Shown here piece by piece: positions 937 through 64,000 of a stretch of DNA of 64,000 bases. The notes under the pieces are model-generated. The model made no database searches. It was given only the letters and a program-made list of their open reading frames with translations, and was not told the origin of the DNA. Both the position numbers and the translations under genes were made by a program. Positions within the stretch are counted from its first letter, which is position 1. Each line of letters begins with the position of its first letter. The stretch is taken from IMG/VR virus record IMGVR_UViG_3300035698_010479, positions 124,001 through 188,000 of that record; one strand, given 5' to 3'.

Positions 937-938
937 AA

Positions 939-5098: not shown

Positions 5099-5100
5099 AA

Positions 5101-7939: not shown

Positions 7940-7968
7940 ATTATAATGTATATTATATATAATGTCAA
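7940..7968 (-). promoter_or_regulatory. consensus sigma70/sigmaA promoter for the replication operon
   Basis: Minus strand reads TTGACA (7968-7963), a 17-nt spacer, then TATAAT (7945-7940), about 45 nt before the dnaN ATG. Confidence 0.9.
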
Positions 7969-36063: not shown

Positions 36064-36065
36064 TT

Positions 36066-38636: not shown

Positions 38637-38644
38637 ATAATCTC

Positions 38645-40501
38645 CTAGTTGGTTTGTTGTACTGTAGCTGTTACCAACACATCTTGGGCAAGTACACCGG
38701 CTTTATAGACTGTTTGTACAAAACCATTTGCGTCTGTATTTAATTCAGTACCACCAGTGATAGAGCCATCTCCACCTCCACCTTCTGAGAATGTCACACG
38801 CCTATTTTTTATCGGTTGAAGAAACTGGTCTTTTACCCAAGCATTTATATTAGTTGTACTTAAACCATTGGCTGCTATAATAGCTGGAGAAGCTGATAAG
38901 GAAATAGATGTTACAAAAGATTCTAGAGGTGATAAAAAGTAATCAAATGCGGATGATCCCTGTAGTCTATACAGATTATTCCTATCCACCGCCATATCCT
39001 GGAGTATAATTGCTACGTTACTTGATATATTGTCCATAACCATAGAGCCATAATAAGGTAACGCAGTAGCACCTGTATATACCATTACAGTACCTTCTAC
39101 GAATGTTAGATTATCAAAAGTATTTATAATATCAGTGTCAGTAGCATTTTTAGAAGATATTACTAGTTGTGCATCTGAATTAAACATTTCAACAACTCCT
39201 AAATACCTCCAAGGTGTGAACTCAGTTGAGCTAGTGGTTTTATAATAGAAATGTACATCCGAAGCAACACGTTTGATTCTAAGACCGTATATATCAATAT
39301 TGGTTAAAGGATCTTCTTCTATACCAGAAACCGTCGTCAAAATACCATCAGTAGCTTTTCTATATATTACAGAAAAATTCTGATGCTCACCTGAGCCAAA
39401 CTCTGTACTATAGCCTCTTGATAACTTACAAAATCTATTCTGTTCGTTAGGAAAAATTAACTTAATGGAATTCTCCATAAAACCAATACCACTATAAGTA
39501 GCATCATAAGCAAGTAATCTACCATCTATTGTGACATCAAAATCCTCTGGTAAGTAGTATTTTGATTGGATACATTCTTCAGACTGTGGTGAGTGTAGTG
39601 GGTTTAAGTAAAGTGTACTACTTTGTATAGTAGGTGTACCACTAATAGTAGTCCATCGGTTAGAATCAATTGTATTAAAGGTATCATTAAATACATCAGC
39701 ATCATAAATATTGCGCTTATATATTGAAGTGTTTACAAATAATGTATTTGTACCTTTAGCATATAATAACATATCCTTACTACCCAAATCTTGGAATGAT
39801 CCTATCTTATAGAATGTACAAGCAGTAATAGCCTTGTATGCACCACCAGAAAACTTGGTTTTAAATGTACCATCTATGGAGCTGAATTTATATAAAGCAC
39901 CAGTAGTACCATCAATACCATTATAATTATTAAATAACCAGATATTTTTATGAAAATTTATTTCAGCACCTACTGCATAACCATAGCTAACTGGAGTACT
40001 TAAAACTACACCTCCGAACACAGTATCAACTATAGCAATATCCTCTTCCTCACCGTTGGCATTAGGTCCTATATGTAAGACAGCTCCTGTGATAACCTCT
40101 GGATTATTTGTATACTCATCCAAATACAATACTAAATCTCCTGGTATAACCAACTCAGTTAATTTTGTATGGTAGTGTTCAATAGTGAAACAATCCGAGT
40201 TGTATGTTAAGCTACCTGAAGAATTTAAAGTTATAGTTTGCTGTAATTTAGCTAAATAATTATCAATTCGCCATCTTTTTATAAATATAGTAGTTGATGG
40301 TGATTCCATAGTCCAAAAATTAACACCATCATATTCTAAGGACTTCACTGTATTATCTAGTAGAATATCGCATGGATATGAAAACGCTGTATTACCATCA
40401 TCCGTTTTTTGAAGTAGTGCATCCTGGTCCTCATCGAACGTATAAAAGTAACCATTACTTACCGTAAAATTGGACTTTCTTATATTAATATTTGTTGCCA
40501 T
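38645..40501 (-). CDS. putative tail fibre paralog 1 with C-terminal Big_1-like domain
   Basis: LSASPAIIAANGLSTTNINAWVKDQFLQPIKNRRVTFS (Big_1). Likely start is MATNIN at 40501, by alignment with paralog starts MAYENI and MAQENI; the ORF track starts at 40534. Confidence 0.65.
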   Translation of the reverse strand: MATNINIRKSNFTVSNGYFYTFDEDQDALLQKTDDGNTAFSYPCDILLDNTVKSLEYDGVNFWTMESPSTTIFIKRWRIDNYLAKLQQTITLNSSGSLTYNSDCFTIEHYHTKLTELVIPGDLVLYLDEYTNNPEVITGAVLHIGPNANGEEEDIAIVDTVFGGVVLSTPVSYGYAVGAEINFHKNIWLFNNYNGIDGTTGALYKFSSIDGTFKTKFSGGAYKAITACTFYKIGSFQDLGSKDMLLYAKGTNTLFVNTSIYKRNIYDADVFNDTFNTIDSNRWTTISGTPTIQSSTLYLNPLHSPQSEECIQSKYYLPEDFDVTIDGRLLAYDATYSGIGFMENSIKLIFPNEQNRFCKLSRGYSTEFGSGEHQNFSVIYRKATDGILTTVSGIEEDPLTNIDIYGLRIKRVASDVHFYYKTTSSTEFTPWRYLGVVEMFNSDAQLVISSKNATDTDIINTFDNLTFVEGTVMVYTGATALPYYGSMVMDNISSNVAIILQDMAVDRNNLYRLQGSSAFDYFLSPLESFVTSISLSASPAIIAANGLSTTNINAWVKDQFLQPIKNRRVTFSEGGGGDGSITGGTELNTDANGFVQTVYKAGVLAQDVLVTATVQQTN

Positions 40502-40506
40502 ATATA

Positions 40507-41004
40507 TTATCCATATAAAATTGTGGGTATCCAATGAAAATCATATTCATAAGGGTCCCCTTTAACGATCACTTCCGATGTTATATCAAAATCTACTTCG
40601 CCATTATTTAAGGTTACCACCATATCTGATAAGTCTATACCTGATGATGGGTGCTTCTCTTCTATAACAAAACGTATATGTTCTGTTATAGGTACATTAA
40701 TACCCACGGGGGAAAAATTTTTTAAAGTCGGTGGGTATCTATCTACATCAAAATCCTGCCAATCTATTATGCTACACATATCAGCAATAGCTTTATTTAT
40801 TTCAGGCTCTATAAAGTCTTCTGTAACTTTGTGTACAAATCTTGGTACTATCTTATTACCACTAGAGTCCAGAGATGCGGTTCCTATCTCTAGCAACCAC
40901 ACCATTTCACCCTCTTCATCCTTTAAAGCATATTTACGTAAGTTTAAATTAAACTTTACTGCTTTTCTAGGATTTAAAGTATGCTTTACAATTATATCAG
41001 ACAT
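40507..41004 (-). CDS. virion protein with C-terminal Ig-like domain
   Basis: DRYPPTLKNFSP...SGIDLSDMVVTLN resembles the Ig-like repeats of 33454..36063. Confidence 0.5.
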   Translation of the reverse strand: MSDIIVKHTLNPRKAVKFNLNLRKYALKDEEGEMVWLLEIGTASLDSSGNKIVPRFVHKVTEDFIEPEINKAIADMCSIIDWQDFDVDRYPPTLKNFSPVGINVPITEHIRFVIEEKHPSSGIDLSDMVVTLNNGEVDFDITSEVIVKGDPYEYDFHWIPTILYG

Positions 41005-47768: not shown

Positions 47769-50700
47769 TTATACTCTCTTTATTGAATATATATGAGTCA
47801 TTGCATTGTTCTGGCTTTCTTTTAATTCATTTATAGACACATTAAGTACTTGTTTCAATGTTATTATTGATGAGGTTAGCCCAGATACCTCTGAAGAAGT
47901 AGCTAGCATATCTTTCTTAAGTCCAGCTATTTCAGATTTCTGATTAATATCTAGTACGGGCAATTCAGCAACAATATCCTTTACGGTAGTTTTAATTAAA
48001 GATATCTGATCGGCAGAACTTTTCTCTAAATTACCTACACGAGAATCAAAATCTTTTAAAGTACTAGCGAACATATCACCCATATCAGCTCCCACAGAAC
48101 TTGTTTTAACATTAATATCCTTCAACTCATCTAAACCTAATATCTTAATATCTCTTAAATTCTCTAGGCCTGTTATTGATATATTTTTCAATTGGTCTAT
48201 ATTTTCAATTCTAATATTAGCTAATTTTTCTAATCCCTCAACTTTTATATCTCTTATACTATCTATACCAGTTATCTTAATATCATGTAGGTCATTTATA
48301 CCTTCAATTTTGATATTCTTAAGCTCACTCAAACCTTCTATCTTTATATCTTTTAGGTCACTCAAACCTTCTATCTTTATATCACGTAAGTCGCTCAAAC
48401 CTTCTATCTTTATATCGGTTAGTTTATCAATACCTTCAATTTTTATATTGGTTAATTTATTTAAAGACTTCTCAAGGTTACTTACAATTTTCTCAAAAGC
48501 ATCTAAACCTTCTATTTCAACTGTCTGCTTTGCTGGTGCTTGTGTATTAATACTAGCTGAGTTATTTTGAGTAGTGTTATTACCAAAGTAATTTTTGTCC
48601 AGTATTACTTCCCCACCTTCTAAAAAGTAACTGCCGGATTTATGTGCAACACCACCATTATGTCTAACCTGTCTACTTAAATTGTTAGAGTTAACATCAC
48701 CGCCTGCTAGGAAATTATTTTTAGTGTTATCACCTCTTGTAAGTATCTCCCCTTGTTTTTGTTTAGTCAGCCTGCTTATTATTTCTATCAACATTTTTTC
48801 AGGAATGGTGCCTGACATAGACTGCATATATTTCTTATAAAAATCTGGGTCGTTACCTGCACGTGTAGTGAAACCATTTAGTTGTTCATTATATGTACGT
48901 AAACCATCTATATTTCGTTCACTTCGTTTTTTAAATGTACCTTTACCATACTTTTCATCCACTAGTTTAGCCATGTCTGATTTACGCTTATCTAAGTAAA
49001 AACTCTCAAAATTACTAGAATGTTGAAAAGCTTCAGACATCATAAAATTAGCTTTTTGATTTGTAGCTACAGCAGCCATACCACCAGCACTGGCCAAAGT
49101 TTTTACATTTCGGTCAGTTATAGATAAACTTTTAAAAAACGATTCTCTACCTTTATCATCTAATGTAGAAAGATACGCTTTTCTTTCTGGAGTATCGGCG
49201 CTTGCCAGATTAACTCTTTTTTGTAGTTCAGATAAAGCATCTGGACCTTTATTTAAATTATCAGCAACGAATGGGGTCCCTTTACCTGTACCATTCATAA
49301 CTGTAAGACCCTTTATATCACTCCAACGTTTTGTAGGTAGATTAACACTAGCACCAGCTCTAGTTGCATCAATTTGCTTTGCTATTAGTTTAGTAGTAGG
49401 TTCTTTCATAGCATTTTCGTAGTATGCAGTATTACCCCTACTTATATTACCTAGTTTAGTAATTTCATCAGTTAATTGTTTTTTGCCCTCTTCTTCTTCA
49501 GGTGTAACTGCATGAGTTAGATTAGCATCCTGTAAGCTAAGATGTAAACCCCTACTGTCTATTGAGTTGCTATCTCTAAATTTAGCTAAAGAACTTATTT
49601 TATTTATTAATTGTTCAGTAGTTTCCTCGGAGTTAATAATATTATTACTAGAAGTACTATTATCTAGACTGGCAGCAACGCGTTCTTTTAAAGATACACC
49701 AGAAGTGTTCTGATTACTAGGTGTTAAGCTAGTATTGTTTTGCCATACACCTTTATTATCTTTATAAACATCTGTTGTATAAACTTGTTTAGGTTCACTA
49801 GGGTAAGAAACTATAGCGTCTTTACTGTACATATCAAATAGCTGCTTTCTTAACTTTTCTTGTTCATCTACAGAGCCGCCTTTCGCAAAGCCTTTGGTGG
49901 CTATGGAGTCAACCATATTTTTTAAGCCTATAGGTCCAGTGCGTGTAACTATATTAATCAGTGAAGCACTATCACCATATATGGCTTGACCTTTACTCAT
50001 AACTTCTTTCAATAATGCTTTGTTATTCATTATTTCTTTAGTATATTTAGAAACATCCAAATTCGTTCCCATAATACCTTGGGCTTCTTTTAGATAACCA
50101 GATAGTCCTGATTTTGTTGTTACATTAGTAGCTTTAGATACTACATTTTTAAATAAGGCAGCAGAACCAAAGCCCGATAAGATATCTACTGGGTCTATCA
50201 TTGGTGTTTCTAAACCACCTATCTGCTGTGAATAGTCTTTCTCATTGGCAAAGCCGTGGTTATTATAATCTTCTTTGGACCATGAAGATCTTATGGTAGC
50301 ATCATCTGGTAATCTACCGCTGTTAAAGGCATCAGCAGTTGCTGTCCCACCAATTTTTGCGACCTCTTCAGGAGTTAATAGTAACTCACCATTACTAACA
50401 TTGATGGGTACTTGGCCACCTTTTGCAAACGAATTAAGCCTGCTTTTGGTAGCTTGAGCATATTTAGCCTGTATAACATATGAACCAGAAGGTACAGCCA
50501 TTGATATATCATCTGAAGTACCAGTACCAGCACCCCTGATTATAGATCCTACAGTTCCACCAGAAGCAAGGCCTGTTGGGTCAGAGAATGACCTAGAAAG
50601 TATATCACCCACCTTACTTAACTCTTCCATAAAAGTAGGTGATTTATCCACCTTTAATACACCTAAAGCCTCTACTAGTTGTGAACTTGTCAACAGGGTA

Positions 50701-53700
50701 TTAATTATTTTATCCGTCTGTGCATTAAGCGCAGATACTACTGGATTAGAAGAAACAGAACTAAGAGCATTCTTTAATTCATCCTTACTAGCACCACCCA
50801 AACTTTCAGTTGTTTGAGAAGATACTTCACGCATGGAATTAAAATCTTGTTCATTTATGGGCGTTCCACGGTCAACTAAACTATTCATTAAATCGTTTAA
50901 TTTTTTGTAACCATTATCTAGACTAACTATAGCAGATCTATCAGATTCCTTATTTTTGGATACTCCAGCAGTATCAAAATCGGTATAATTGTTATCAGCT
51001 ATGCGCTCTTGTATTTTTATACGGGAAGAAGCAATTGCTGCCTGATAATCTTGTCCTGGCCTAATCGCGTCACGTATAGCTTGCGAAGAACGTAATCTCT
51101 CTTCATGTTGTTTGTATTCTTCTTGTTTCTTTGGTAGATTAGCATTTCCTAGTTTGGCCTGCATCCATTCCTGAGGAGAAGTACTTTGCCCATGCATAGT
51201 TTTAAGATACTGTGCCTTCTCTATATCAAACTGGTTGGACTTACCGCTTATTAAAGTACCTCCACCATTTCTAGCAAAATCCTCACGCTGATTTATATCT
51301 ATTTGTTGAGGTGCAAATGGACTTGAACCTCCATATAAACTATCCAATTTACTTTGCAGACCGGATGCCCCCATAGAGGCAGCATACATTGAAGTTTTTA
51401 CACTAACAATAGCAGTTTCAAATTGTTTTGCTGCATCGGTGGCTTCCATAAAATTACTCATCTTCATACTAGCAACTTCTAGTGCATGTCCAGTTTCTTC
51501 TAACTCCTTTTTAGCTGCAGCAAGTGCTAAAGTTTTTGTAACAATATCACCTGATACTATACTAGCTTGAGCACCCTTACCAAAGTAACCGTTATTAGAT
51601 GTTTGAGGGTCTTCTAATTTAAGATTATTTAAGGTATCTTCTAACTCTTTAACTTTCTGTAATTGTCCATCATATAAATTAGTATTTACTTTATATTGTG
51701 ACATAGTATCTTTCATACCAGCACTTGCTTGAAGATGTGCATATTGTGTGTTACTTATACTATCCACACTATTAGGTATTAAAGATATATCATTTGTAGC
51801 ACCTCTTAGTCTACCACCCATACCTCTATTATTAACATTATACAATGCATCAGTACGTACACTGGTAATAGTAGCAAGTTTATTTTTAATATTCTCTATA
51901 GTTCTAGCTGCTGCGTCTGTCTCTTTAATTACAGAATGTAATGCTACCCTATAGCCATCTTGTTTTTCTGTAACATTTTCAAGTTCTTTACCTATGTCTT
52001 TTAAAAAATCGTCCCATTTTTCAAGTTCATCAGCATCAGTAGCTTGTGATCTATTCTGCAAACCAGCATTCATCCTCGAAGTAAGACCTACTTTTTTATC
52101 TTCTAAAGCTGAGTACTCTTTTAAAACATTCTGTCCTCTATATTTATGGTTCAGAGAGTCCTCTGGATTAACAGAGTTTATAACCCTTAAAGAGAAATTT
52201 TTAAAATCCTCGGCCCAATCTGTTGGCCCGTAAATACCTTTTTGATCTTCTTTTCTTTTTTGAACTAGTTGGTAAAGTTCCATACTATTTAAATCGGTAA
52301 CCCCTTTGGTTTCTATATTTAAATCTTTAGGTCCAGAGAAGCCCTCAAAAGCACCAGTACCAAGTTTAAGAGAATTCTTAAAATTTTCAGCAAAATTAGC
52401 ATCAGCTATTGACTTATTCATAGCCTCAATCTGCATTAAGAATTTTTCAGCAATATCTGCCTTTCTCATCTCTTCTTTTAGTGTGGCTATCTCTTTATTA
52501 TACTTGTCATGCTCAGATATTAAAGAACTTTCAATAGCCGCAGTATCATCAAGTGCTTTATTATATTCTTTCGCAGTATCAAAAATTCTGGATACTTCTT
52601 CAGTGGGTACCTCTGCCCCGTTGTTACCGTCAGCCATTGGGTTACGTGTAGTATCATAAACTTTTTGAGCTGCCTCTGAATTAGCAAGTATAGCATCATA
52701 TATTGCAGTGTTTTCACCCTCGGCTAAATTACCTAAGTCTGTTGCTTTGGTTTTATCAGCTGATTTCTCTGCAGCGTACCTTGATAAAGTAAATGCTGAA
52801 GCAGCAGCTGCCGCTTGAGCGAACCTATTCACACTATCTTGGTCAAGTGATACAACAGACGCTGGTAAACTAGAAACTTCACCACCATTGGTATATCCCC
52901 TAACTACACCACCATTAGCAAAAGAAGTCTTTTGTCCGTGTTGTAATTTTTTTAGGTTTGTCTCACCTATTTTAGAAGCGTCTTCAGGTGATATAAAGTA
53001 TTCCCCATTACTTACACGTATATCTGATTTTGCTGACCCGCCGGATGCAAACTCGATCTGTTCTTTAGCATTCTGTGCATACTTAGAAGGTACTATAAAA
53101 GAACCGTCTGGCACGTCATTCATATTGATAGAGTCAGATGTACCTGTTCCAGGACCTTTAATCATACCTGAACCTACAGTACCACCGCCAGCATGTCCAG
53201 CTAAAGAGTCGTTATACTTATCGTAAATGTCTTCATCTTCATTTAAATTTGCATATAATAGTGAGCCTCCAGCAGCTCCTAAAGTTCCTGTAGCAAGCGC
53301 CTCATACATTTTAGGATTTGCCTTCTTAAATGCCTCATAGGCACTAGGGGAAGCCGTAGCGGTTGCTTTAATTGCAGCTGTAGTTTTTCGAGCACCTGTT
53401 ACTAAATTTTTATTTTGTAAAATTTTCCCTATTTCGGCCAAACCAGAGGCAGCTGCTCCTATACCTAAACCAACGCCTGTACCAGTTAATTTTAATAAAC
53501 CCTTAAGCCCTGTAGATATAAAACCACCACTAGCGTAAGATTCCTCTTCATTGTTAAGCAAGGAATAAGCACCTAAAGATCCTGCGGCAATTGCAGAATA
53601 TTTTAATTTTGACATTTTAGATAGTTTATCCTGCAAGCCAGCTTTTGTATTTTTTATATCTTCTAAATTAGGTGCTTTACTAGATATAAAATCCTTACCC

Positions 53701-56700
53701 ATAAGTGCACCATCAATTAAGAAACTGGCAGCTGTACCAACACCAGGAATGTTACTAACTAATCCAGAAGCCATTTCCATACCGGCACCTAGATAGTCAC
53801 CTATGGCTGCTCTTTCAGCAGCAAATCCTGCGGCGGCTACTGTACCTATGCCTGGTATCTTTTTAAGGCCTATCTTACTTGCAGCCTTAGCTGTATATTT
53901 ACCTATAGTGCCTTTTGTGTTACTTATAGCATCCCCTAAAAACATTTTAGTTACTTCAGAATTAAAACCAGCTTTCTTACCAAAAGAAGCTGCAATATCA
54001 GCTCCTTTTGTTTCAGCAGTAGCTTGGAAAGCTTTAAGCTTGTCTAAGGTATCAGCCCCAAACCCCGTGGCCTTACTGTAGCCTAATGGGTCTGATACTG
54101 CACCTTTTAAAAGAGTAGCTTGATAACGAGCTTTTTCTAAAGTATCCCCTAAAAACATTTTAGTTACTTCAGAATTAAAACCAGCTTTCTTACCAAAAGA
54201 AGCTGCAATATCAGCTCCTTTTGTTTCAGCAGTAGCTTGGAAAGCTTTAAGCTTGTCTAATCTGTCATTAACGTAGCCGCCGTCAGCGTACATAACTGGT
54301 GGACCATTTTTTAAAGCGTCTAATACTGGTTTTAACTTTTTACGCTGTTCTTCAGTTAAAACTTCCTCACCTGCAGTAAGTAGGGATGGTTGTACATCAC
54401 CTGTACCTGGTACTATTTGTTTAACGGTACCACCAGTAGAAAACTTTTGTATGAAACCTCCAGCAGCATTACCTGGAGTAGATTCAGAACTACCATTAAC
54501 TGCATCTGTATTGTTTTTTAATGCTTCAACTAAGGCGTCCAATGCGCCTAAAGATGCTGTAGCTGCGTAATCAGCTGCTTTACCTGTAAATTCTCCGGCT
54601 GAAGACATTTTACCTTTTATATCTTCGTAAGACTCACCAGTTTTTATCTTAGCACCCTCATATACTTTTGAAGCTTCTTCTTTGAGGTTGACCTCCTCAC
54701 CACGTGCCATTTTATCCGCAGAAGATTTAATAGCATCTTGGCTTGTGGTTTTAACATACTCTTTTAACTCAGCTAATTTATCTTTTAAATCTTGTGCACC
54801 TTGATTAACAGATTCCTTTGTATTTTCGCGTAAGTCTGCATTTGGATTTTCTACTTTACGTTTAAATTCTTTAGCTTTCCATTCAGCGTCAAATACAACG
54901 TTATCTTTTGTATTACTAAATGATTTTGATGCAGCTGAATATTTTGCATCTCTATCATCATTTTCCTTATTAGGTGTTACCTTAAGGTCTAAGGTTTCTT
55001 CTGTAAACTGCTTCATAAAACCTTCAGAGGCATCCTTAAATCTACTAGCAGCTTTACCTTGTTTTAGTGTACTGAATATACCATCGTCTTTCATTGCTGC
55101 AGCAAATATCGTAACTTCTTTACCAAAATCTTTTACCAACGGTGGCAAATCATCACCGGTCATACCTTGATTTAATTTAGCTGCACCATAAACACCAAGA
55201 GCTGCCCCGCCTGCACCAATTCGTTTGATATTGTCTTCGGACATTCCTAAATTACGCGCTAAAAGCATACCGCCAGAAGTACCACCGGCAGCATATCGCA
55301 TAGTACCATACATTCTAGCTTTCTTCTCTTCTGCAGCTTTGGCAGTTGTGAGTGACTCCATCTGAGGAGCATAGTCAATGAAGCCTACTTCGTTCTCTCT
55401 CTTTTTTAGATCTTGAATTTCTTTTTCATAATTTTCAATCTTCTTATTTGAGAAGTTGCTATTAAAGGCTTGGTATACACCAAAACCAGTAGCGGCTCCG
55501 GCTATATTTTTTGAGTTTAGTATTGTGCTCTCTTTTGACTTAGCTATATTTTCAGCTTGTATGCTCTGTACACCCTCTACAGTTTTATCGAAAGTAGGTG
55601 TACCTTTCTTGGTTACTAAACCAAACCAAGATTTTTCGTCAGGCATATTAGCTTTCATTTCTGAAGATAATGTTTTGAAATCCAAACCACCAAAAGCTCT
55701 CTGAATAAGTTCTTCACCTTTGAAGTCGCCTGAACCAAATATACCACTATTTACTTTATTAGTAGCACCAACTATACCCATACGGTCTACCAACTGCTTA
55801 GTAAGGTTATCTAAAGCAGCATTTGCTTTAGTAGTTTTATCAACATCTCCAGCAGAAGCTGCCTCATTTCTAATAGATGCTACCCGGTCTAATGCCTCGC
55901 TTAAACGTTCATTTTTAGTAATATTTGGCGATGGTAACATGAAATCCAATGCGTCCATAAAACTAGTTTGCATAGCTTCAGAACCAGCCGTATCCGATAG
56001 ATTATTTAGTATTTCATCTAATTTATCTACAGTTTTAGCAGTGTTCTCCGCAGTATTACTAGTATCTATCTTAAGTTCTGCAATACCTAAATCACCTGTC
56101 TTAGCTACTATGTCTGTGTATTTAGCAAAATCCTTATCACCTATAGTCGAACCAAAACCACCTGATAGATTTTTTATACTTTCTAGAGCTACTTTTGATC
56201 TTTCTACAGTATACATCTGTTCAGCTTTACCAGATTTTCTAATTTCTAACTCTTTAAGTTTTTTGGAGTTTTCTTCAAATTTAGAAGACTTTATTAATAA
56301 TCGTTCTTGTGAAGATAAATCTGCCTTATTATATTTACCTAAATCTACGTTGGCTAATGAAGCATCTCTACCTTTTAATAGACCAGAAGTTTCTTTTGAT
56401 AAAGGAGATCTTGTCTTCTCTACTGCTATGTTTTCCTTAACAGCACGAGTATTAGCTTCCATAGTTTTAGTCAAATCAGCGAATACTGCACGATACTGTA
56501 AAACTACTTGATTATTTCTAAGTATATTTTGAAGCTTCATTAGAGACTCGTAAAGACCAGTCGACATTTCAACACTACTTGTGTCCAAACCGTCAAGATG
56601 CATTTTTTCCAACTGCTCTAAACTAGTTTTGTATTCATGGAGAGGTTTATTGTAATATTTTTCAAAATCATCAGCCCAACCTTTCTGAAAAGGTGACTCA

Positions 56701-59700
56701 CCAAAACCTTCAGTAGGATTAAAACCTTTATCTCCTTGAATAATAGTAGATGTACTAATGTCGCTAAAGAAACGTTCTCCAAGATTGAAGTCTGTTTTGA
56801 ACCCCTTCTTAGCTAGACCTACTAACCCTGCACTGGCACCAGTAATAATAGTACCTAACGCATCTATTCTTTCGGACATATCTTGTTCTATAACTTTAGT
56901 TGGTAATATAGATTCAACTAAATCCTGCATATTATTATCAAATTTACGTTCGTCTATTTTTAAAGTCTTAGAGTTAAAGTAAGTAGCTACCCATTCAAAT
57001 ATACCATCTGAAGTTTCCTTAAGTTTTACAATGGCTTGTTGTCCTGCCATATTGAAACCTTTGGCAGCGTCATCTGTAAAAGTAACTAGGTCACCGCTTA
57101 ATACTTTACCCTCTCTTTTTGATACACCAGCAGTTTCTGTATTAGCTACACTAAGTGCTTTAGTAGCACCAAGATTATTACTTTCAGGGAACAAACGTTT
57201 CATTACCTCTGCTCCTAATACATCCTCTTTTGTAACCTTTCCTTTCACACCTTTAACATTAAACTGGGGCTCAACGTCTATCATCAACTGATAGCCCGCC
57301 TGTAATTCGTCAGCACCCATTATACTAGCTACTTCGTCTTTACCAAAACCAGCTGTTGGTATGTTTGATAATGATCTTTTAAATTCAGAATATGTAACAT
57401 TAAAAGTATCTTTAATCTTAGCCAATTTACCCTGTAGATTTTTTATATCGTCATCATAAACTGTGGACATGGGCGAAGCGTTTTTCTTTGCAACTAAATT
57501 ATTAAGCTTTCCTGTAAGTATTTCAAGACTTTTAGCAGGTGCTACACTTATCTGATTACTTATTAATTCACCTATAATAGGTATCTCTTTAGTAAGGTCT
57601 TTAAGTTCACTCTTCCACGTTTCAGAACCATCTGTTTTTGTTAGTGCCTCTATATGTCTAGCAGCAACACTAGAATCCTTTGCGGCTAAATCTCTAACTT
57701 TAGACCTCTCAAAAGTATTTAAAAGTGTTTGATAATTATCAGAAGTTCTTAGGATAACATTACCAAGCTTGTCGTAACCAGAGATCATATTTGTATTTTC
57801 TCTAGCTATTTTTTCACCTAATTTTAATGCGTCTGTCTGTACAGATGATAGGGCATTTAAAGGATTAACATAGGTACCAAGATACTTCTGTCTATCAGCA
57901 GTTGCTGGGTCTTCACTTTTAGCTACATCCTTTAACTTTCTCTTAATATCCCCTGTAGATTTTTCAGTATCTCTGATACTAAACAAATCTGTCTCATCTT
58001 TTGTTATGGCACCATACATAGAATCAGCAAAATCTTTAGAAGATCTTGTCGTCTTCATGAATTCAGCGCCAAGTGTTTTTATAGCGGGTGTCAACAAACC
58101 CAAAGTTAATAACATTGGTGCCATAGATTTTATAACACCTGCGTTATCTTTGGCCCAGTTTTTAAATATATCCCCACCGGCACCTAATTTTTTTGAAAAC
58201 TCATCTATAAAGATACCAGCAGCAGCACCACCTAATCCAGCCACCTCTGTTGCCACACCTAGGAAAGATGAAGCAACTTTACCTATACCTTTCATACCGC
58301 CTAAAGCAAATGCACCTTTTACGCCTTCTGATTTAGAATATTTTGATGCTGCCCCACCTGCCAAATCTTTATATGTAACATCTTCGTCTTTTCCATATTT
58401 ACCACCGCCTAGCGATGATACAACGGCACTCAACCAAGAGCTACCTCTAACCATAGATTGTCCAAAACCCTGACCAGCTTTACCAGTACCTTGTAAACCC
58501 CCTCCTACTGTGTCATTAAAAGATTTTCCAGCTGATACTAACATGTAAGCAGCCTTTCCTAAAGCTGATTCAAAATCTCTAATACCTTTACCCTGGCCTC
58601 TGCCTTCTACTTGGTCAGCTACTAATGTTTTCAAACCTCTTGAAGATGGGTCAGTAGCCCCTGCACCCATTATTTCAAAAGAAGCTGTTTTAAGTTCATC
58701 TTTTATAGAACCTATTAAATTACCAACTATAGGTGTACCACCAGAAAAGAAGTTAGATATAGTATCTAGAATTTTAGCGCCTTTAGATAAATAGGTAAAT
58801 AACCCTAACGCGGCTACACTGGCTATCTTAAAAGAGGCTGGTATAGCAGAGACAGTTTCAGCCATAGCTCGCATACCCTGAAGACCAAACTTGGCTGCTG
58901 GGAAAGCTATTTTACCAAAAGCCAACTGTAATTCTAGGGAAGCTGACTTGGTCTGTTCAACTTGTTTCGAGTAAGTCTGCATTAACTCTGCATTTCTTCT
59001 TGAAGCCGAACCTTGTGAATTCATACTATCTTGCACGCCGTCCAATGCTTCCTGCCAGTTATCCATAAGAACAAGTAAAGAGTTATATTGTCTAGTACCA
59101 CCTATAGCCTGTGCTACAGTTAGTTTCTGGGCACTATTTAACTCTTTCCATTTCTCTGCTAGGCCGCTAAGAATATCAAAGCCGCCACGTAACTCACCTG
59201 CACCGGTTATAGTAGGAACATTAAGCTTAGCCAACTCATTAGGTCCTTTCTCAGAAGATAATCTTCTCATTATAAATCTCAAGGAAGTACCTACCTCTTT
59301 ACCAGACTGTCTAGTAACAGAACCTATAGAGGCCACAATACCGTTTAACTGGTCAAAAGTAATACCAGCTGTGCTAGCAGCTGCTGCTGACTTTTTAATA
59401 GCTTCAGCCATATCACCTGCTGTAATAGCATGTTTAGATTCAACTTCAGACCATGAATCTAAGAAACGCATAGATCTATCACCCTCAGTTCTAAACACCT
59501 TCATAGCTGCGGTAAGAGCTTCTGTAGCATCTTTTGCTTTTAACGTAGTAACGTTAGCAGCCAACATAGATGTGTTAGTTCTATCGGTAACTTCTGATTG
59601 AGACAAGCCCTGTTGCGCGTATACAACCATAGCATCTATAACACCAGTAGTACCGGTGCCATACTCTTTGGCCATACCAACAGCCGATTTCTGTAAACCG

Positions 59701-62700
59701 GAAAAATCTGTAGTTTTAGCTGGCATAACCATTTTTAATCTTGCCATACCTACTTCTACTTCTGCTACTGTTTCAACTGCCTCTTTTAATTTATCTACGC
59801 CGCCATAAATTAATGAAGAAGCTGCGCCCCATTTTACAGCTCTCTCAATAGCCCCTAAGAAGCCTCTATTGGCACCAGCTAGAGAAGCTGCCATATCTTC
59901 TTGTTTTGCTGTAAAAATACCTACTGTTTGTCCTGCAGTATCTACAGACTCACTTAATTTATGAAAAAGAACTCGTTGATTTTCGATAGGTTTACCAGAA
60001 TCATCAAATACCTTAGCATCATAAGTATAACGCTCTCCTACCTTTGCACCACCCTCTTCGTTACCTTTACCGTAGTATTCCCGTAATTTTGATATATTGC
60101 GTTTATGTAAGTTAGCTTGCATTTCTGGATCGGCCCATTTAGGTACCTGTACAACACCCGTGTCACCCCATACACCTGGTCCACCAGGTTGTGTTTTTCT
60201 TCCCATATCAACTTTAGAGAGCTTATTTTCTGCGTCTTTTAAAAGTTTAATAGTAGTTTCTAAATTCTTACTTTCTACAGATAGTGGGCTATCAGAGACA
60301 TTAAACTGTTTAAATAACTCTAAAGCACTTCTAAGTCTTGTTACTCTCTCTGCGGCACCCTCAAAATTCCAGGCCTCAGCAATCTCAGGTCCTAGTCTTT
60401 CCAGTAATCTACCATTACTCATGAGAGCTATGGATTCATCGTTCATTTCTGTAAGGTCTTTTATAGCATTTCTTGCTTTGTCTGTAGGTGCAGTTATATT
60501 ACCTCTATTTTTACCAGAAAGATCTCCTGTTATATCATCAAATACTTTTTTAAGTAAGTCACTATCTGGATCAGTTATATCACCTAAATCCCTATTTGAT
60601 TTTCTTTGTATATCTACAGGAGCTTGATATACACCAGCTGCTTTAGCTATATCTGGAAAAGCCCAAACTTTATTAGCAGTATATATGTCGCTTCTTTTAC
60701 CAGTATCATCCGTTATTTTTTTCTGTACAGCAGTAACAGCTGATTCTAGTCTATTATAAGCCTTACCTTCTTCATTACCACCCATACCTTTAACACTTTC
60801 ATAAGCTATTTGGGCTTCCTCTGCCTTATCCATTAAATACCCTACTACAGCGTCTTTATATAGCCGCCACGCAGTAGATATGTCTTTACCCGACATACCC
60901 TGTGCAGGATCTTGTTGATTCAATATACGGGCATTTTTAGTGAAATCTAGGAATTCTGATACATCTATACCTCCACGGTCTTTTGCCCCTTCGATATAAT
61001 CCTGAGCTTCTGTTGTAAGTTTCTTAGCTTCATTATTAAAATCCATACCCCTAGCTTCATACAAAGATTTGGAAGCGTCCCTTAATAATTGTAAATTAGA
61101 CAACTCTACTGACGGGCCTGTTCCTTCATGTGGTTGTAATGTTTGTGCTCTACCCGCAGCTGATTTACGTTGTTCTTCCGTAGTTTTAAATTTATCTACA
61201 GTTTGATTTATATTTCCTATACCTGAGTCATCATCTTTAAACGCACCTGTGGTATAAGCAGAATTACCTGTATTGCCAAGATTAGCGGAGTCTATTAATT
61301 GGCCTAATAATTTTACAGGGAATACTAGACTAGCATTAATACCTTCAATGAATACTGGAATTACTCCTCCAGTTGTTGGTATAGCTAGTTTAGTACCTTC
61401 TGGTGGACTAGGTGGTAAGTTGCCTCCTGTTACGCCTGTATTAAATGCTGGGTGTGGTGGCTCTTCACCTCTATTAGTATTGTACTCAACCCCAGTTTGA
61501 TTTTGTGGTGTAATAGTAGGTATAACACTTGCTGATTCTTGAGTTTTAAATACTCCAAGAGATGCGTTAGCTATAGCATCTTTATCTTCAGTAACACCTA
61601 TAGATATATCTCTTCCAGCTGTTGGTAATGGATCTTTTCTGTATCCTGATACTTCTGAAATTCTAGACATCCTGGCACGAAGTATTTCCAAGTCTCCTAG
61701 TTTATCATTATACTTAGAAATACTATCTATCTCTTCAGATTTAGCATTCTCAGGGATATCCGATAATTTAGCTACATGTTCAGGAGAAGTAAGTATACTA
61801 TTTTGCTTTCTATCACTTATAGGTGCTAAACCTAAAGTATTTTCCATGGAGCCTATTAATTCTTTTATAGGTCCCATAGGTGCTTTACCTAAGGCAAACT
61901 GTTCACTAGTTGTTCCATATAGCAAACTACTAGCTTTAGAATAATCTTTTTGATTAACACCTTCTTTCCCTAGAGAATCAAAAGTCTTTACAAGCTCAGC
62001 GTAAGCGCCTTTACTTCTAAATGTCTTAGCTACTGAGTCCAAACCATCTTTAAATTGTTCATCGAAGGTATCATCTACTTGGAAACCACCAGTTCTAAAT
62101 TTATACATAGGGTCATTAATATTAGTGACCATACTAGATACATCTATACCCTTAGGTGGGTTACCATCTTTAGGCTCATAACGTTTACTTAATATTTTAT
62201 AAGCCACCTCAGCGCTCATTGGTTTTTCACTTTTAGCTTGAATACCCTTTATTGCTAACTGTTCAATAGTACTTTGAAGATCTCTTAAAAACCCATCAAA
62301 GCCTAGATTCTTTACTAAAGTGTCAGTTAAGTCAGATCTATTCATATCAGAAACATTACCTATGTTAGCACCTGTTGCTGCTACTTGATCTTTCAACTCT
62401 TGTGTAGAAAACTTACCAAAAGTATTTCTTAATGACTCCTCATTTATATTCTTAAACTTCTTTAAATCATCATAACTTTTATTTTTGTCAAGTTTCTGCA
62501 TTAAGTCTGCTAAACCACTAGGACCTGTAGTAACACCTTTGACCAATTCACCAGCTATTGGTCTCTCACCAGCATGTTTTACATCCATACCTTTTTGAAT
62601 AGTAAATCTAAAGAACTCATTTAATTGAGTATTTCGTTCTCGTGTAACAAAGTCGTTATCTATTTTTCCTGATTTAGTCTTATCAGAAAGAGCTATCTCA

Positions 62701-64000
62701 CCTTCACCAAAACCACGTTTACTTTCATATGCACGCATAAGTTTAGTCATACTTTCAGTATCTGTACCAGTGTTTATTTTAAATAACTGGGCATTTACTG
62801 CTGTATCTAACTTCATATTAGCTAACTCTTCTTTCAAGTGTCCTTCAATTAAAGATTTGATATTTATATCTTTTATTGTGTCAAGCTGTAATGAAGCTGC
62901 TTGTGAAGCATCACCAAGATCTTCAATATCTTTTATAGAACTATCATCAAATTTGGCTCCTGCTTTATCAAAAATTGCTCTCATAACACGACTTACCGAC
63001 TCACCGCCAGAAGTCATATTTAGATCTTGTTCTTTACTAGCCAAAATACCAACCTTCTCCTTAGGATTTAAATAAGATAAGTCTTCAGTTGTAAAGGGTT
63101 TATCAAGAAAAGAGTAACCTTTCGAGCTATCAAATTTTTTACTAAATGCTTGAGACATATAAGATAGTGGTAAATCACCTTGTGAAGGTTGTTTAGAATC
63201 ATAGGAATAAAAATCACCAAATTTACCAGCTGTAGAGTCTATATCTTCTGTAAGCATTTTAAAATGCTTATAAATATCATTTCTAGCTTCAGATGTTTTA
63301 GCGGTATGGAGCTCAATCTGGTCGCCGTCATAATCAAGTTTCTGTGCATGAGCCACATATTTTGGAAGTACTGCAGATATCGCCTCGTTTAATCTATCAA
63401 TTGTATTGGTTAACTCATCGGCTTTAGGGTCATCTCCGGTATCTCTTGCAGATTCTCTTTCTATAGACAAGGTTTTTACTTTATCTTTTATAGAATTATA
63501 AACCTCTTCAAAAGCACCCATATCCATCTCAGGTGTTCCAGGTACCATTAAGGAATCATCCCCTATACCACCTGCAGTTTGTACAAGTTTAGCTTTGTAG
63601 GGTTTTAGTGAGGAAGTTCCAGTAAATGGAAAACGTACGCTCTCTATATAAGGAGATAATTCTTCGTTAACATACCGCTTGATATCTTCAGCCCTGTCGC
63701 CACCGTTTACTTTTTTAGCAGTGTTTTCTAGTTTATCTGAGTAGACCAACAAATCTTTTAAAGAGCCCTCAACTTGATTACCTTTATCACCATTTAATAA
63801 AAAGCCTTTATCGGCATCGTATTTCTTGGTAAAATTTACTCTAAGTTTTTCAGCTAACTTACTAGACACACCCAACTCATGTTGTTTTAATACGGGCATA
63901 CCAATTTCTTTGTACTTAGCAACATTGTCTGAATGTTCTGCAGTAAGTTTGTCAATTTTAGAAATTTCACTAGTGAGGTCTAATCCATCGATCCCACGTA
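47769..64000 (-). CDS. giant tail tape-measure protein fused to an N-terminal two-barrel RNA polymerase beta'-like region (5'-truncated, at least 5409 aa)
   Basis: The frame stays open from 63899 to the edge (...RGIDGLDLTSEISKIDKLTAEHSDNVAKYKEIG-MPVLK). TP901-type TMP core at about 58900-59870 (AVETVAEVEVGMARLKMV...YAQQG...ATEALTA...VGTSLRFIMRRL...AIGGTRQYN). RNAP-like motifs RFP, DYDGDQIELH and QKGMDVKH lie upstream of it. Confidence 0.85.
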   Translation of the reverse strand, partial: RGIDGLDLTSEISKIDKLTAEHSDNVAKYKEIGMPVLKQHELGVSSKLAEKLRVNFTKKYDADKGFLLNGDKGNQVEGSLKDLLVYSDKLENTAKKVNGGDRAEDIKRYVNEELSPYIESVRFPFTGTSSLKPYKAKLVQTAGGIGDDSLMVPGTPEMDMGAFEEVYNSIKDKVKTLSIERESARDTGDDPKADELTNTIDRLNEAISAVLPKYVAHAQKLDYDGDQIELHTAKTSEARNDIYKHFKMLTEDIDSTAGKFGDFYSYDSKQPSQGDLPLSYMSQAFSKKFDSSKGYSFLDKPFTTEDLSYLNPKEKVGILASKEQDLNMTSGGESVSRVMRAIFDKAGAKFDDSSIKDIEDLGDASQAASLQLDTIKDINIKSLIEGHLKEELANMKLDTAVNAQLFKINTGTDTESMTKLMRAYESKRGFGEGEIALSDKTKSGKIDNDFVTRERNTQLNEFFRFTIQKGMDVKHAGERPIAGELVKGVTTGPSGLADLMQKLDKNKSYDDLKKFKNINEESLRNTFGKFSTQELKDQVAATGANIGNVSDMNRSDLTDTLVKNLGFDGFLRDLQSTIEQLAIKGIQAKSEKPMSAEVAYKILSKRYEPKDGNPPKGIDVSSMVTNINDPMYKFRTGGFQVDDTFDEQFKDGLDSVAKTFRSKGAYAELVKTFDSLGKEGVNQKDYSKASSLLYGTTSEQFALGKAPMGPIKELIGSMENTLGLAPISDRKQNSILTSPEHVAKLSDIPENAKSEEIDSISKYNDKLGDLEILRARMSRISEVSGYRKDPLPTAGRDISIGVTEDKDAIANASLGVFKTQESASVIPTITPQNQTGVEYNTNRGEEPPHPAFNTGVTGGNLPPSPPEGTKLAIPTTGGVIPVFIEGINASLVFPVKLLGQLIDSANLGNTGNSAYTTGAFKDDDSGIGNINQTVDKFKTTEEQRKSAAGRAQTLQPHEGTGPSVELSNLQLLRDASKSLYEARGMDFNNEAKKLTTEAQDYIEGAKDRGGIDVSEFLDFTKNARILNQQDPAQGMSGKDISTAWRLYKDAVVGYLMDKAEEAQIAYESVKGMGGNEEGKAYNRLESAVTAVQKKITDDTGKRSDIYTANKVWAFPDIAKAAGVYQAPVDIQRKSNRDLGDITDPDSDLLKKVFDDITGDLSGKNRGNITAPTDKARNAIKDLTEMNDESIALMSNGRLLERLGPEIAEAWNFEGAAERVTRLRSALELFKQFNVSDSPLSVESKNLETTIKLLKDAENKLSKVDMGRKTQPGGPGVWGDTGVVQVPKWADPEMQANLHKRNISKLREYYGKGNEEGGAKVGERYTYDAKVFDDSGKPIENQRVLFHKLSESVDTAGQTVGIFTAKQEDMAASLAGANRGFLGAIERAVKWGAASSLIYGGVDKLKEAVETVAEVEVGMARLKMVMPAKTTDFSGLQKSAVGMAKEYGTGTTGVIDAMVVYAQQGLSQSEVTDRTNTSMLAANVTTLKAKDATEALTAAMKVFRTEGDRSMRFLDSWSEVESKHAITAGDMAEAIKKSAAAASTAGITFDQLNGIVASIGSVTRQSGKEVGTSLRFIMRRLSSEKGPNELAKLNVPTITGAGELRGGFDILSGLAEKWKELNSAQKLTVAQAIGGTRQYNSLLVLMDNWQEALDGVQDSMNSQGSASRRNAELMQTYSKQVEQTKSASLELQLAFGKIAFPAAKFGLQGMRAMAETVSAIPASFKIASVAALGLFTYLSKGAKILDTISNFFSGGTPIVGNLIGSIKDELKTASFEIMGAGATDPSSRGLKTLVADQVEGRGQGKGIRDFESALGKAAYMLVSAGKSFNDTVGGGLQGTGKAGQGFGQSMVRGSSWLSAVVSSLGGGKYGKDEDVTYKDLAGGAASKYSKSEGVKGAFALGGMKGIGKVASSFLGVATEVAGLGGAAAGIFIDEFSKKLGAGGDIFKNWAKDNAGVIKSMAPMLLTLGLLTPAIKTLGAEFMKTTRSSKDFADSMYGAITKDETDLFSIRDTEKSTGDIKRKLKDVAKSEDPATADRQKYLGTYVNPLNALSSVQTDALKLGEKIARENTNMISGYDKLGNVILRTSDNYQTLLNTFERSKVRDLAAKDSSVAARHIEALTKTDGSETWKSELKDLTKEIPIIGELISNQISVAPAKSLEILTGKLNNLVAKKNASPMSTVYDDDIKNLQGKLAKIKDTFNVTYSEFKRSLSNIPTAGFGKDEVASIMGADELQAGYQLMIDVEPQFNVKGVKGKVTKEDVLGAEVMKRLFPESNNLGATKALSVANTETAGVSKREGKVLSGDLVTFTDDAAKGFNMAGQQAIVKLKETSDGIFEWVATYFNSKTLKIDERKFDNNMQDLVESILPTKVIEQDMSERIDALGTIITGASAGLVGLAKKGFKTDFNLGERFFSDISTSTIIQGDKGFNPTEGFGESPFQKGWADDFEKYYNKPLHEYKTSLEQLEKMHLDGLDTSSVEMSTGLYESLMKLQNILRNNQVVLQYRAVFADLTKTMEANTRAVKENIAVEKTRSPLSKETSGLLKGRDASLANVDLGKYNKADLSSQERLLIKSSKFEENSKKLKELEIRKSGKAEQMYTVERSKVALESIKNLSGGFGSTIGDKDFAKYTDIVAKTGDLGIAELKIDTSNTAENTAKTVDKLDEILNNLSDTAGSEAMQTSFMDALDFMLPSPNITKNERLSEALDRVASIRNEAASAGDVDKTTKANAALDNLTKQLVDRMGIVGATNKVNSGIFGSGDFKGEELIQRAFGGLDFKTLSSEMKANMPDEKSWFGLVTKKGTPTFDKTVEGVQSIQAENIAKSKESTILNSKNIAGAATGFGVYQAFNSNFSNKKIENYEKEIQDLKKRENEVGFIDYAPQMESLTTAKAAEEKKARMYGTMRYAAGGTSGGMLLARNLGMSEDNIKRIGAGGAALGVYGAAKLNQGMTGDDLPPLVKDFGKEVTIFAAAMKDDGIFSTLKQGKAASRFKDASEGFMKQFTEETLDLKVTPNKENDDRDAKYSAASKSFSNTKDNVVFDAEWKAKEFKRKVENPNADLRENTKESVNQGAQDLKDKLAELKEYVKTTSQDAIKSSADKMARGEEVNLKEEASKVYEGAKIKTGESYEDIKGKMSSAGEFTGKAADYAATASLGALDALVEALKNNTDAVNGSSESTPGNAAGGFIQKFSTGGTVKQIVPGTGDVQPSLLTAGEEVLTEEQRKKLKPVLDALKNGPPVMYADGGYVNDRLDKLKAFQATAETKGADIAASFGKKAGFNSEVTKMFLGDTLEKARYQATLLKGAVSDPLGYSKATGFGADTLDKLKAFQATAETKGADIAASFGKKAGFNSEVTKMFLGDAISNTKGTIGKYTAKAASKIGLKKIPGIGTVAAAGFAAERAAIGDYLGAGMEMASGLVSNIPGVGTAASFLIDGALMGKDFISSKAPNLEDIKNTKAGLQDKLSKMSKLKYSAIAAGSLGAYSLLNNEEESYASGGFISTGLKGLLKLTGTGVGLGIGAAASGLAEIGKILQNKNLVTGARKTTAAIKATATASPSAYEAFKKANPKMYEALATGTLGAAGGSLLYANLNEDEDIYDKYNDSLAGHAGGGTVGSGMIKGPGTGTSDSINMNDVPDGSFIVPSKYAQNAKEQIEFASGGSAKSDIRVSNGEYFISPEDASKIGETNLKKLQHGQKTSFANGGVVRGYTNGGEVSSLPASVVSLDQDSVNRFAQAAAAASAFTLSRYAAEKSADKTKATDLGNLAEGENTAIYDAILANSEAAQKVYDTTRNPMADGNNGAEVPTEEVSRIFDTAKEYNKALDDTAAIESSLISEHDKYNKEIATLKEEMRKADIAEKFLMQIEAMNKSIADANFAENFKNSLKLGTGAFEGFSGPKDLNIETKGVTDLNSMELYQLVQKRKEDQKGIYGPTDWAEDFKNFSLRVINSVNPEDSLNHKYRGQNVLKEYSALEDKKVGLTSRMNAGLQNRSQATDADELEKWDDFLKDIGKELENVTEKQDGYRVALHSVIKETDAAARTIENIKNKLATITSVRTDALYNVNNRGMGGRLRGATNDISLIPNSVDSISNTQYAHLQASAGMKDTMSQYKVNTNLYDGQLQKVKELEDTLNNLKLEDPQTSNNGYFGKGAQASIVSGDIVTKTLALAAAKKELEETGHALEVASMKMSNFMEATDAAKQFETAIVSVKTSMYAASMGASGLQSKLDSLYGGSSPFAPQQIDINQREDFARNGGGTLISGKSNQFDIEKAQYLKTMHGQSTSPQEWMQAKLGNANLPKKQEEYKQHEERLRSSQAIRDAIRPGQDYQAAIASSRIKIQERIADNNYTDFDTAGVSKNKESDRSAIVSLDNGYKKLNDLMNSLVDRGTPINEQDFNSMREVSSQTTESLGGASKDELKNALSSVSSNPVVSALNAQTDKIINTLLTSSQLVEALGVLKVDKSPTFMEELSKVGDILSRSFSDPTGLASGGTVGSIIRGAGTGTSDDISMAVPSGSYVIQAKYAQATKSRLNSFAKGGQVPINVSNGELLLTPEEVAKIGGTATADAFNSGRLPDDATIRSSWSKEDYNNHGFANEKDYSQQIGGLETPMIDPVDILSGFGSAALFKNVVSKATNVTTKSGLSGYLKEAQGIMGTNLDVSKYTKEIMNNKALLKEVMSKGQAIYGDSASLINIVTRTGPIGLKNMVDSIATKGFAKGGSVDEQEKLRKQLFDMYSKDAIVSYPSEPKQVYTTDVYKDNKGVWQNNTSLTPSNQNTSGVSLKERVAASLDNSTSSNNIINSEETTEQLINKISSLAKFRDSNSIDSRGLHLSLQDANLTHAVTPEEEEGKKQLTDEITKLGNISRGNTAYYENAMKEPTTKLIAKQIDATRAGASVNLPTKRWSDIKGLTVMNGTGKGTPFVADNLNKGPDALSELQKRVNLASADTPERKAYLSTLDDKGRESFFKSLSITDRNVKTLASAGGMAAVATNQKANFMMSEAFQHSSNFESFYLDKRKSDMAKLVDEKYGKGTFKKRSERNIDGLRTYNEQLNGFTTRAGNDPDFYKKYMQSMSGTIPEKMLIEIISRLTKQKQGEILTRGDNTKNNFLAGGDVNSNNLSRQVRHNGGVAHKSGSYFLEGGEVILDKNYFGNNTTQNNSASINTQAPAKQTVEIEGLDAFEKIVSNLEKSLNKLTNIKIEGIDKLTDIKIEGLSDLRDIKIEGLSDLKDIKIEGLSELKNIKIEGINDLHDIKITGIDSIRDIKVEGLEKLANIRIENIDQLKNISITGLENLRDIKILGLDELKDINVKTSSVGADMGDMFASTLKDFDSRVGNLEKSSADQISLIKTTVKDIVAELPVLDINQKSEIAGLKKDMLATSSEVSGLTSSIITLKQVLNVSINELKESQNNAMTHIYSIKRV
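48120..48449 (-). repeat. 10 x 33-bp (11-aa) coding tandem repeat, consensus DIKIEGLxxLx
   Basis: NIKIEGIDKLT DIKIEGLSDLR DIKIEGLSDLK DIKIEGLSELK ... DIKILGLDELK; the DNA unit ctcaaaccttctatctttatatc occurs three times identically. Confidence 0.95.
53931..54260. repeat. perfect 117-bp direct repeat (53931-54047 and 54144-54260), in frame
   Basis: The two copies are identical by eye, with period 213 bp; each encodes LDKLKAFQATAETKGADIAASFGKKAGFNSEVTKMFLGD. Confidence 0.95.
63321..63335 (-). other. DYDGD: predicted catalytic Mg-binding aspartate triad of a two-barrel RNA polymerase
   Basis: Context AQKLDYDGDQIELHTAKTSEARNDI versus E. coli beta' [24 protein letters not shown]. Confidence 0.8.

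Follow-up and report, generated by a model that had tools for sequence, protein, structure and literature searches.

Does the giant tape-measure gene at one edge of this stretch of viral DNA also encode an RNA polymerase (RNAP)? The stretch, referred to here as the window, comprises 64,000 nucleotides (nt) of IMG/VR virus record IMGVR_UViG_3300035698_010479 (positions 124,001 to 188,000). An original prediction, made from its letters alone, had proposed that one open reading frame (ORF) carries an RNAP catalytic region followed by a TP901-type tape-measure protein (TMP). Our analysis indicates that the minus strand of window positions 58,900-64,000 probably encodes the β′-like half of a single-chain, fused β-β′-type two-barrel RNAP that lies within the TMP and would serve as a tail-delivered virion RNAP for the first genes.

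Translation of the minus strand revealed a single frame without a stop from nt 64000 to a stop at 47769.

47769..64000, minus strand: window part of the giant ORF, with 5,376 amino acids (aa) counted from an internal Met at 63899, and another 33 codons to the edge

Because the frame is open up to nt 64000, the ORF continues upstream. The ATG at 63899, taken from the ORF list, was rejected as the gene start: no stop separates it from nt 64000, and homologues are longer. Residues (r) are nevertheless numbered from this internal Met, with negative numbers denoting residues of the same ORF upstream of the window on L001. This contig is the source of the window (IMGVR_UViG_3300035698_010479, 228,458 base pairs) and matches it with 0 mismatches over the 12,351 nt that they share. 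On L001 the giant frame opens past a stop at 3664, and its first potential starts are a TTG at 3710 and an ATG at 3839.

L001:3710 or 3839 to 10000: upstream part of the ORF that occupies 47769..64000 (minus strand) in the window

Retrieval of this upstream sequence, where the rest of the frame had been expected, extended the protein by 2,054-2,097 aa to a full length of ~7,430-7,473 aa. Window Met1 aligns with residue 2092 of homologue P0001 (80% identity) and residue 2154 of homologue P0010 (34%). The polymerase module of ~2,100 aa occupies roughly aa 600-2,730 of the ~7,450-aa TMP, and its DYDGD motif lies near residue 2,286, counted from the TTG start. As in the original prediction, the RNAP precedes the TMP core; it does not, however, begin at the very N-terminus. 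The leader, the first ~560 aa of the giant ORF (L001:3665-5400), is poorly conserved (mean column identity ~0.2) and has no family match.

The four motifs from which a β′-like catalytic region had been proposed all lie in this one frame, DYDGD and QKGMDVKH exactly where they had been placed. Together with the elements around them, they make up the half of the module that falls within the window, as follows.

63870..63896, minus strand: PVLKQHELG (r2-10), which resembles β′ PxLxLHQCGLP, just before or within the β′-like double-psi β-barrel (DPBB-A)
63300..63650, minus strand: core of DPBB-A (r84-200), with RxP strand, hairpin insertion and catalytic loop
63582..63638, minus strand: VRFPFTGTSSLKPYKAKLV (r88-106), counterpart of β′ NRAPTLHRLGIQAFEP; R89, P91, G94 and P100 invariant
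63369..63521, minus strand: two-helix hairpin insertion in DPBB-A (r127-177), placed after the 'VPGxPE' strand and before the catalytic loop
63321..63335, minus strand: DYDGD (r189-193), the metal-binding aspartate triad; wider motif QKLD[FY]DGDxIExH
62715..62867, minus strand: bridge-helix-like helix of 51 residues (r345-395), a helix in the AlphaFold (AF2) model; K374, G378 and E382 invariant
62766-62813, minus strand: KLDTAVNAQLFKINTG (r363-378), inside the bridge-helix-like helix
62529..62657, minus strand: trigger-loop-like helix-loop-helix (r415-457), with AF2 helix 415-438, a loop and helix 448-457
62574-62597, minus strand: QKGMDVKH (r435-442), in the trigger-loop-like element
61980..62528, minus strand: C-terminal part of the polymerase module (r458-640), conserved and mostly helical; AF2 predicted local distance difference test (pLDDT) mostly 80-95 to ~r600

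A DxDxD loop after an RxP strand, the arrangement by which DPBB-A is recognized, is thus present, with all scores below formal significance, and it is followed by a bridge helix and trigger loop in the form of predicted helices with a conserved trigger-loop register. The spacing of Q435/M438/H442/G444 equals the Q..M...H.G of β′ Q929/M932/H936/G938.

Conservation of these motifs was assessed in an alignment of 65-66 independent homologous loci, 24-85% identical to the window's ORF. The key residues proved invariant or nearly so: R89, P91, G94, P100, P120, G121 and P123 in the RxP strand and barrel; Q186, K187, L188, D189, D191, G192 and D193 in the catalytic loop, along with H198 and R206; K374, G378 and E382 in the bridge-helix-like helix; and N427, E428, R431, Q435, G437, D439 and K441 in the trigger-loop-like element, where M438, H442 and G444 are kept in 89-98% of loci. 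P2, V3, L4, E8 and G10 of PVLKQHELG are each at least 89% conserved. The family's most conserved positions thus coincide with those that are key to a two-barrel polymerase.

A two-barrel enzyme needs a β-like partner for DPBB-A, and the original prediction had placed this second barrel upstream, outside the window. Its motifs were found there, in the same ORF on L001, with β hallmarks followed by those of the β′ N-terminus in the expected order (family forms are the consensus or the L001 sequence).

ORF position ~1,025: GMMPixEQNAPrRg, counterpart of the β fork-loop region PFxEHxDxxRALMG
r-876..-858: GxNVlaELRxTAxTFEDQI, counterpart of β GxNxxVAFMxWxGYNFEDS
L001:7712-7753: FGRK(-759)LTTR(-755)YGSK(-751)GV, counterpart of β GDK1065MAGR1069HGNK1073GV in exact register
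r-598..-581: RISSxGxAKRGLQxExLE, counterpart of β SRMNIGQILE
From r-468: IxEEPxxxxWSxxxIxxxxKGxKLNxPAFxAYxxxFGE, counterpart of the β′ N-terminus SPExIRxWSxGEVxKPETINYRTxKPExDGLFCxxIFGP
About r-70: GKKGxIxxxFFxR, counterpart of β′ GKQGRFRQNLLGKR
r0-10, at the window edge: GMPVLKQHELG, counterpart of β′ PxLxLHQCGLP

R-760, K-759, T-756, R-755, K-751 and G-750 of the β-like loop are invariant, and FEDQ lies ~100 aa farther upstream. Two relatives, P0023 (6,792 aa) and P0038 (7,100 aa), lack the β-like half and start 40-100 aa ahead of the 'IIEEPxxxxW' motif, that is, at the predicted β/β′ junction. Their sequences suggest a natural split into a separate β-like gene and a β′-TMP gene, and these phages may keep the β-like part as a gene of its own.

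To compare the family with cellular enzymes, we built a β profile (73 sequences) and a β′ profile (46 sequences) from 120 rpoBC stretches of diverse bacteria and aligned them by hhalign. Against β, hits 1, 2 and 4 were the FED, GDK...KGV and SRMN motifs, which are collinear (E 0.037, 0.099 and 0.87). Against β′, the best hit was the N-terminal 'SPExIRxWS...IFGP' region (E 0.0048, 145 columns), and hits at the GKQGRFRQN-like, PxLxLHQCGLP-like and NADFDGDQ motifs were collinear with it; the PVLKQHELG region was hit 2 (family 569-590 with β′ 412-433, E 0.31). Reversed-sequence and cross-subunit controls reached a best E of 0.2-0.7 and contained no hallmark motifs. The top hits against single E. 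coli β and β′ sequences were the same hallmark loops, the DYDGD loop finding its best match in β′ residues 457-480 (E 0.0089). The global mode of hhalign was uninformative. When 65 members were scanned singly against Pfam, 37 matched RNA_pol_Rpb1_2 (PF00623; best E 1.6e-5), compared with 12 for the next family; for the window protein, RNA_pol_Rpb1_2 was given as its only family match, at E 0.05-0.09.

Structure prediction pointed in the same direction. An AF2 model of window r1-736, built with 65 sequences, had a pLDDT of 79.4 and a predicted template-modelling score (pTM) of 0.73, with strands around the RxP and DYDGD motifs (84-89, 98-106 and 195-198 in the DPBB-A region); the hairpin insertion was modelled as helices 127-153 and 157-177 (pLDDT 79-96). 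Among the 50 best Foldseek matches of this model in the PDB, ~45 were RNAP largest subunits (bacterial β′, Rpb1, A190 and C160), with probabilities up to 0.98 over ~219-250 columns. A larger model of 1,200 aa that covered both barrels (pLDDT 76.8) gave the same Foldseek trend.

Could the ORF nevertheless encode no polymerase at all, its motifs resembling those of RNAP by chance in a tail protein that is long and helical, or could it be an assembly chimera? The weak E-values to RNAPs and the many spurious coiled-coil Pfam matches of the same sequences would fit such an explanation. Against it, at least seven β/β′ hallmarks occur in the correct order and register at the family's most conserved positions, RNAP largest subunits dominate the Foldseek lists, and the controls score worse. 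The family itself is also broad. A word-indexed protein search returned 34 homologues, all 34 with D[FY]DGD, and an exhaustive search of 1.84 billion representatives returned 86 clusters (50% identity) at E ≤1e-3; almost without exception, a full-length member is a TP901-type tape measure, 7,000-8,000 aa long, in which the matching region spans ~aa 1,900-2,900. A metagenome scan added 77 loci, in nearly all of which 2,050-2,530 aa of the same ORF precede the motif. Family contigs reach 285 kb and come from many environmental samples. A tblastn search with r1-700 found no match in 50,697 genomes of cultured or deposited phages. Because more than 60 independent contigs, drawn from many samples, keep the same fusion, the junction reflects a conserved architecture and no misassembly, and we regard an explanation without a polymerase as very improbable.

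Several family members depart from the uninterrupted frame. The giant ORF of L011 contains three isolated in-frame TAG codons (8654-8656, 9671-9673 and ~17243) with collinearity kept, which could mean that this phage recodes TAG or that the sequence contains errors. A programmed frameshift before the TMP core was considered for two unrelated loci and rejected in both: the break in L027 (~13,996-14,062) comes from the loss of 1 nt compared with L024, which is 98% identical and stays in frame, and that in L051 (~7,229-7,385) falls in a poly-C (poly-Pro) run, so that both are most likely indel errors. A distant relative, P0095 (5,013 aa, E 9.6e-14), has DFDGD at residue 1528 and, by regular-expression search, no recognizable trigger-loop or β-loop motif; it may represent a different architecture built on the same idea.

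Downstream of the polymerase module, the Pro/Gly linker and TP901-type core that had been described were found at r794-850 and ~r1350-1660.

61350..61520, minus strand: Pro/Gly-rich linker (r794-850), poorly conserved
59097..59678, minus strand: tape-measure core, Pfam PF10145 PhageMin_Tail (~r1408-1601), E 2.4e-25
58797..58853, minus strand: hydrophobic 19-mer (r1683-1701, Kyte-Doolittle) just past the TMP core, a candidate membrane-inserting segment
58206..58262, minus strand: second hydrophobic 19-mer (r1880-1898, Kyte-Doolittle)

The PF10145 score was 90 bits (cut-off 33.2), and 14 of the 15 PHROG families matched were TMP families, spanning ~r1348-1663 (phrog_4211, E 2e-81). A core domain, a long helical protein, hydrophobic segments and a tail-gene setting together identify the protein as a TMP; a Pfam scan of the window protein found no metallopeptidase domain. 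Motifs, conservation and fold matches thus bear out the central claim of the original prediction, that a β′-like RNAP catalytic part and a giant TP901-type TMP share one ORF.

What would a polymerase do on a tape measure? A precedent is gp96 of Thermus phage P23-45 (Chaban et al. 2024; PMC10770324), a TMP that carries an active virion RNAP in its N-terminal portion. Gp96 has 5,002 aa, with DFDGD at 779-783 and an RNAP fragment at 327-1124, and its transcription of pre-early genes was shown experimentally in P23-45 (PMC10770324). The topology here, initially thought to be the opposite of that in P23-45, is the same, because the gp96 RNAP is also N-terminal (PMC10770324). In more than 60 loci of the present family, as in gp96 and the proteins grouped with it (P74-26, G20c and TSP4), an RNAP with D[FY]DGD, here a predicted two-barrel enzyme, lies N-terminal to a tape measure in one polypeptide. 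The predicted order of elements here likewise agrees with that of gp96 (DPBB-B, which is putative in the present family, then DPBB-A, bridge helix, trigger loop and TMP with membrane segments), as does the great length of the TMP (~7,450 aa here, 5,002 aa in gp96).

Tape measures sit in the lumen of the tail, from which they pass into the host envelope by ejection before the DNA follows (PMC10770324), and the most likely function of the module is therefore that of a virion RNAP transcribing the first genes. By analogy with gp96, and from what TMPs do, the giant protein would be a component of the tail that enters the cell envelope by ejection before the DNA does. Its polymerase, being N-terminal, would leave last, beside the leading DNA end, and would then transcribe the first (pre-early) genes, possibly during genome entry. 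On this analogy the module is probably a tail-delivered virion RNAP.

An active two-barrel polymerase carried on the TMP might instead have a main job other than early expression, such as pulling the 228-kb genome into the cell or synthesizing primers or other RNAs. The evidence for the main explanation serves this alternative equally well. The polymerase is, moreover, part of one chain with a pore-forming TMP that carries hydrophobic segments, and T7-type RNAP is known to internalize its genome by transcription. The authors of the P23-45 study propose transcription concomitant with DNA translocation (PMC10770324). A primase role is unnecessary because the phage has its own DnaG-type primase and DnaB, which are encoded in a replication/recombination block at the left end of the window (172-7896, minus strand).

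172-936, minus strand: DnaJ
1605-2642, minus strand: DnaG-type primase, with Zn ribbon and Toprim
2617-4086, minus strand: DnaB helicase
5101-6198, minus strand: RecA (E 3e-71)
6763-7896, minus strand: DNA polymerase III β-clamp homologue (sliding clamp)

No datum separates an entry motor from early transcription, and both can hold together; we consider it rather unlikely that early expression is not the main task.

A number of observations weigh against a tail-delivered, β-β′-type RNAP. Taken one by one, the comparisons with known RNAPs all lack statistical strength, and the hhalign E-values are marginal. Foldseek gave no PDB match at E ≤1e-3 (E ≥0.4), with a root-mean-square deviation of 8-9 Å over ~220 columns, and phmmer and profile hmmsearch of all PDB sequences returned coiled-coil noise only and no RNAP. 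The register of the bridge helix relative to β′/Rpb1 is imperfect, its sequence likeness is weak, and hhalign found no match there. In the β-like region, none of 65 members matched a Pfam Rpb2 family, and the β-like barrel had a pLDDT <50 in the 1,200-aa AF2 model, so that the fold of the second barrel and the facing-barrel geometry are not demonstrated; of the structure foreseen in the original prediction, the strands around DYDGD and the likeness to RNAP largest subunits emerged, but the second barrel did not. No significant similarity to gp96 was detected by hhalign, with no tblastn or PDB matches, and gp96 was absent from the Foldseek top 50. Packaging and ejection of the module are predictions, as are its activity, template and promoters, and a folded module of ~230 kDa has no obvious way through or inside the tail tube.

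Some of these points would also suit an RNAP-derived but catalytically dead domain that acts as a DNA-binding or structural tail plug, or as a spacer of tail length. Its extreme divergence from known RNAPs, the absence of the β′ Zn-finger cysteines from the N-terminal-like motif in the hhalign alignment, and the poor model of the second barrel favor such a relic. Yet the D-x-D-G-D triad, the β-like K/R/K and the trigger-loop Q/M/H register are all kept across loci of 24-85% identity, and a purely structural role would leave residues needed for catalysis alone free to vary. That residues with a purely catalytic role do not vary speaks against a dead domain, which we judge quite unlikely.

The concept of a TMP-RNAP fusion is already published; the polymerase described here is a separate, larger and more cell-like version of it. 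Direct comparison with gp96 revealed no homology: hhalign against gp96 1-1200 gave E 0.075, in an alignment confined to the DFDGD loop, and E 0.14. The module is larger (~2,100 aa versus ~800-1,100 aa in gp96), with ~950 aa rather than ~200 aa between the barrels, and unlike gp96 it retains collinear β and β′ hallmarks and is preceded by ~600 poorly conserved residues; the absence of a metallopeptidase domain from the Pfam results is a further difference. For gp96 itself, DFDGD was reported to be the only detectable resemblance to known RNAPs (PMC10770324). The phages differ too, those with the present module being jumbo phages of 230-285 kb from mesophilic environments, whereas gp96 belongs to an 84-kb Thermus phage. 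Full-text literature searches turned up no TMP-fused RNAP beyond P23-45 and its close relatives, and neither did the supplements of PMC10770324. On balance, we lean towards a second, independently evolved TMP-RNAP fusion, in which a whole β-β′ enzyme of cellular ancestry was placed in one chain within the 7,000-8,000-residue TMPs of a widespread, uncultivated jumbo-phage clade.

Other polymerases offer further comparisons. With β/β′ (Rpb2/Rpb1), including natural β-β′ fusions, it shares hallmark order and register, and cellular β′/Rpb1 are its best Foldseek matches. Its sequence is far below family thresholds (Rpb1_2 best 1.6e-5, in one member; Rpb2 none), and it differs from cellular RNAP in being a single chain fused to a tail protein, in lacking the Zn-finger cysteines, in the helical hairpin inserted in DPBB-A and in a compact region after the trigger loop. 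CrAss-like phi14:2 gp66, Neurospora QDE-1 and YonO-type enzymes carry both barrels on a single polypeptide, as the present module is predicted to do, and gp66 belongs to a large protein that is packaged in virions and injected. Unlike the present module they have short inter-barrel connectors, and gp66 and QDE-1/YonO-type proteins were absent from the Foldseek top 50; they belong to the other major two-barrel RNAP clade (PMC10770324). The module here looks multisubunit-derived. A Foldseek search of BFVD yielded nothing significant, only a mixture of TMPs, crAss-like proteins and giant-virus RNAP subunits. The virion RNAPs of phiKZ/AR9-type phages and of N4 do the job proposed here, as particle-borne, injected phage enzymes for early genes. 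The phiKZ/AR9 enzymes consist of several β and β′ fragments packed in the head, and N4 vRNAP is T7-like with a right-hand fold; unlike the present module, none of them lies within a tape measure.

The remainder of the window adds context. The C-terminal ~250 aa of the giant ORF (47769-55499, minus strand) gave weak Pfam matches of leucine-rich-repeat type, below cut-off, to LRR_RPS2 (E 0.0011) and LRR_EndoS (E 0.019). Downstream of the TMP, between its gene and the replication block, large proteins contain Ig-like Big_1 and lectin-like Laminin_G_3 domains (33454-40534, minus strand), which makes a baseplate or fibre role probable. Of the remaining neighbours (up to 2,272 aa), almost none matched a PHROG or Pfam family, and PHROGs yielded nothing useful for the first ~3,400 aa of the giant protein and 17 neighbouring proteins. 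No second RNAP-like ORF with D[FYW]D[GT]D occurred in the window or in the ±10-kb flanks of 82 loci; two DxDxD strings in other ORFs of the window lack RNAP context.

If this reading is correct, TMP-fused RNAPs would be common among jumbo phages and no longer the curiosity of one small group of Thermus phages, and the strategy would have arisen here from a different, cell-like β-β′ enzyme. If it evolved independently, delivery of the transcription machinery on the tape measure would be a solution that recurs among phages. The family would also offer a compact, single-chain relative of cellular RNAP for studies of minimal transcription machinery, and an annotation rule for thousands of residues now labelled only 'tape measure'. 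Finally, it would pose a sharp physical question: how a polymerase of ~230 kDa travels with, or through, a phage tail.

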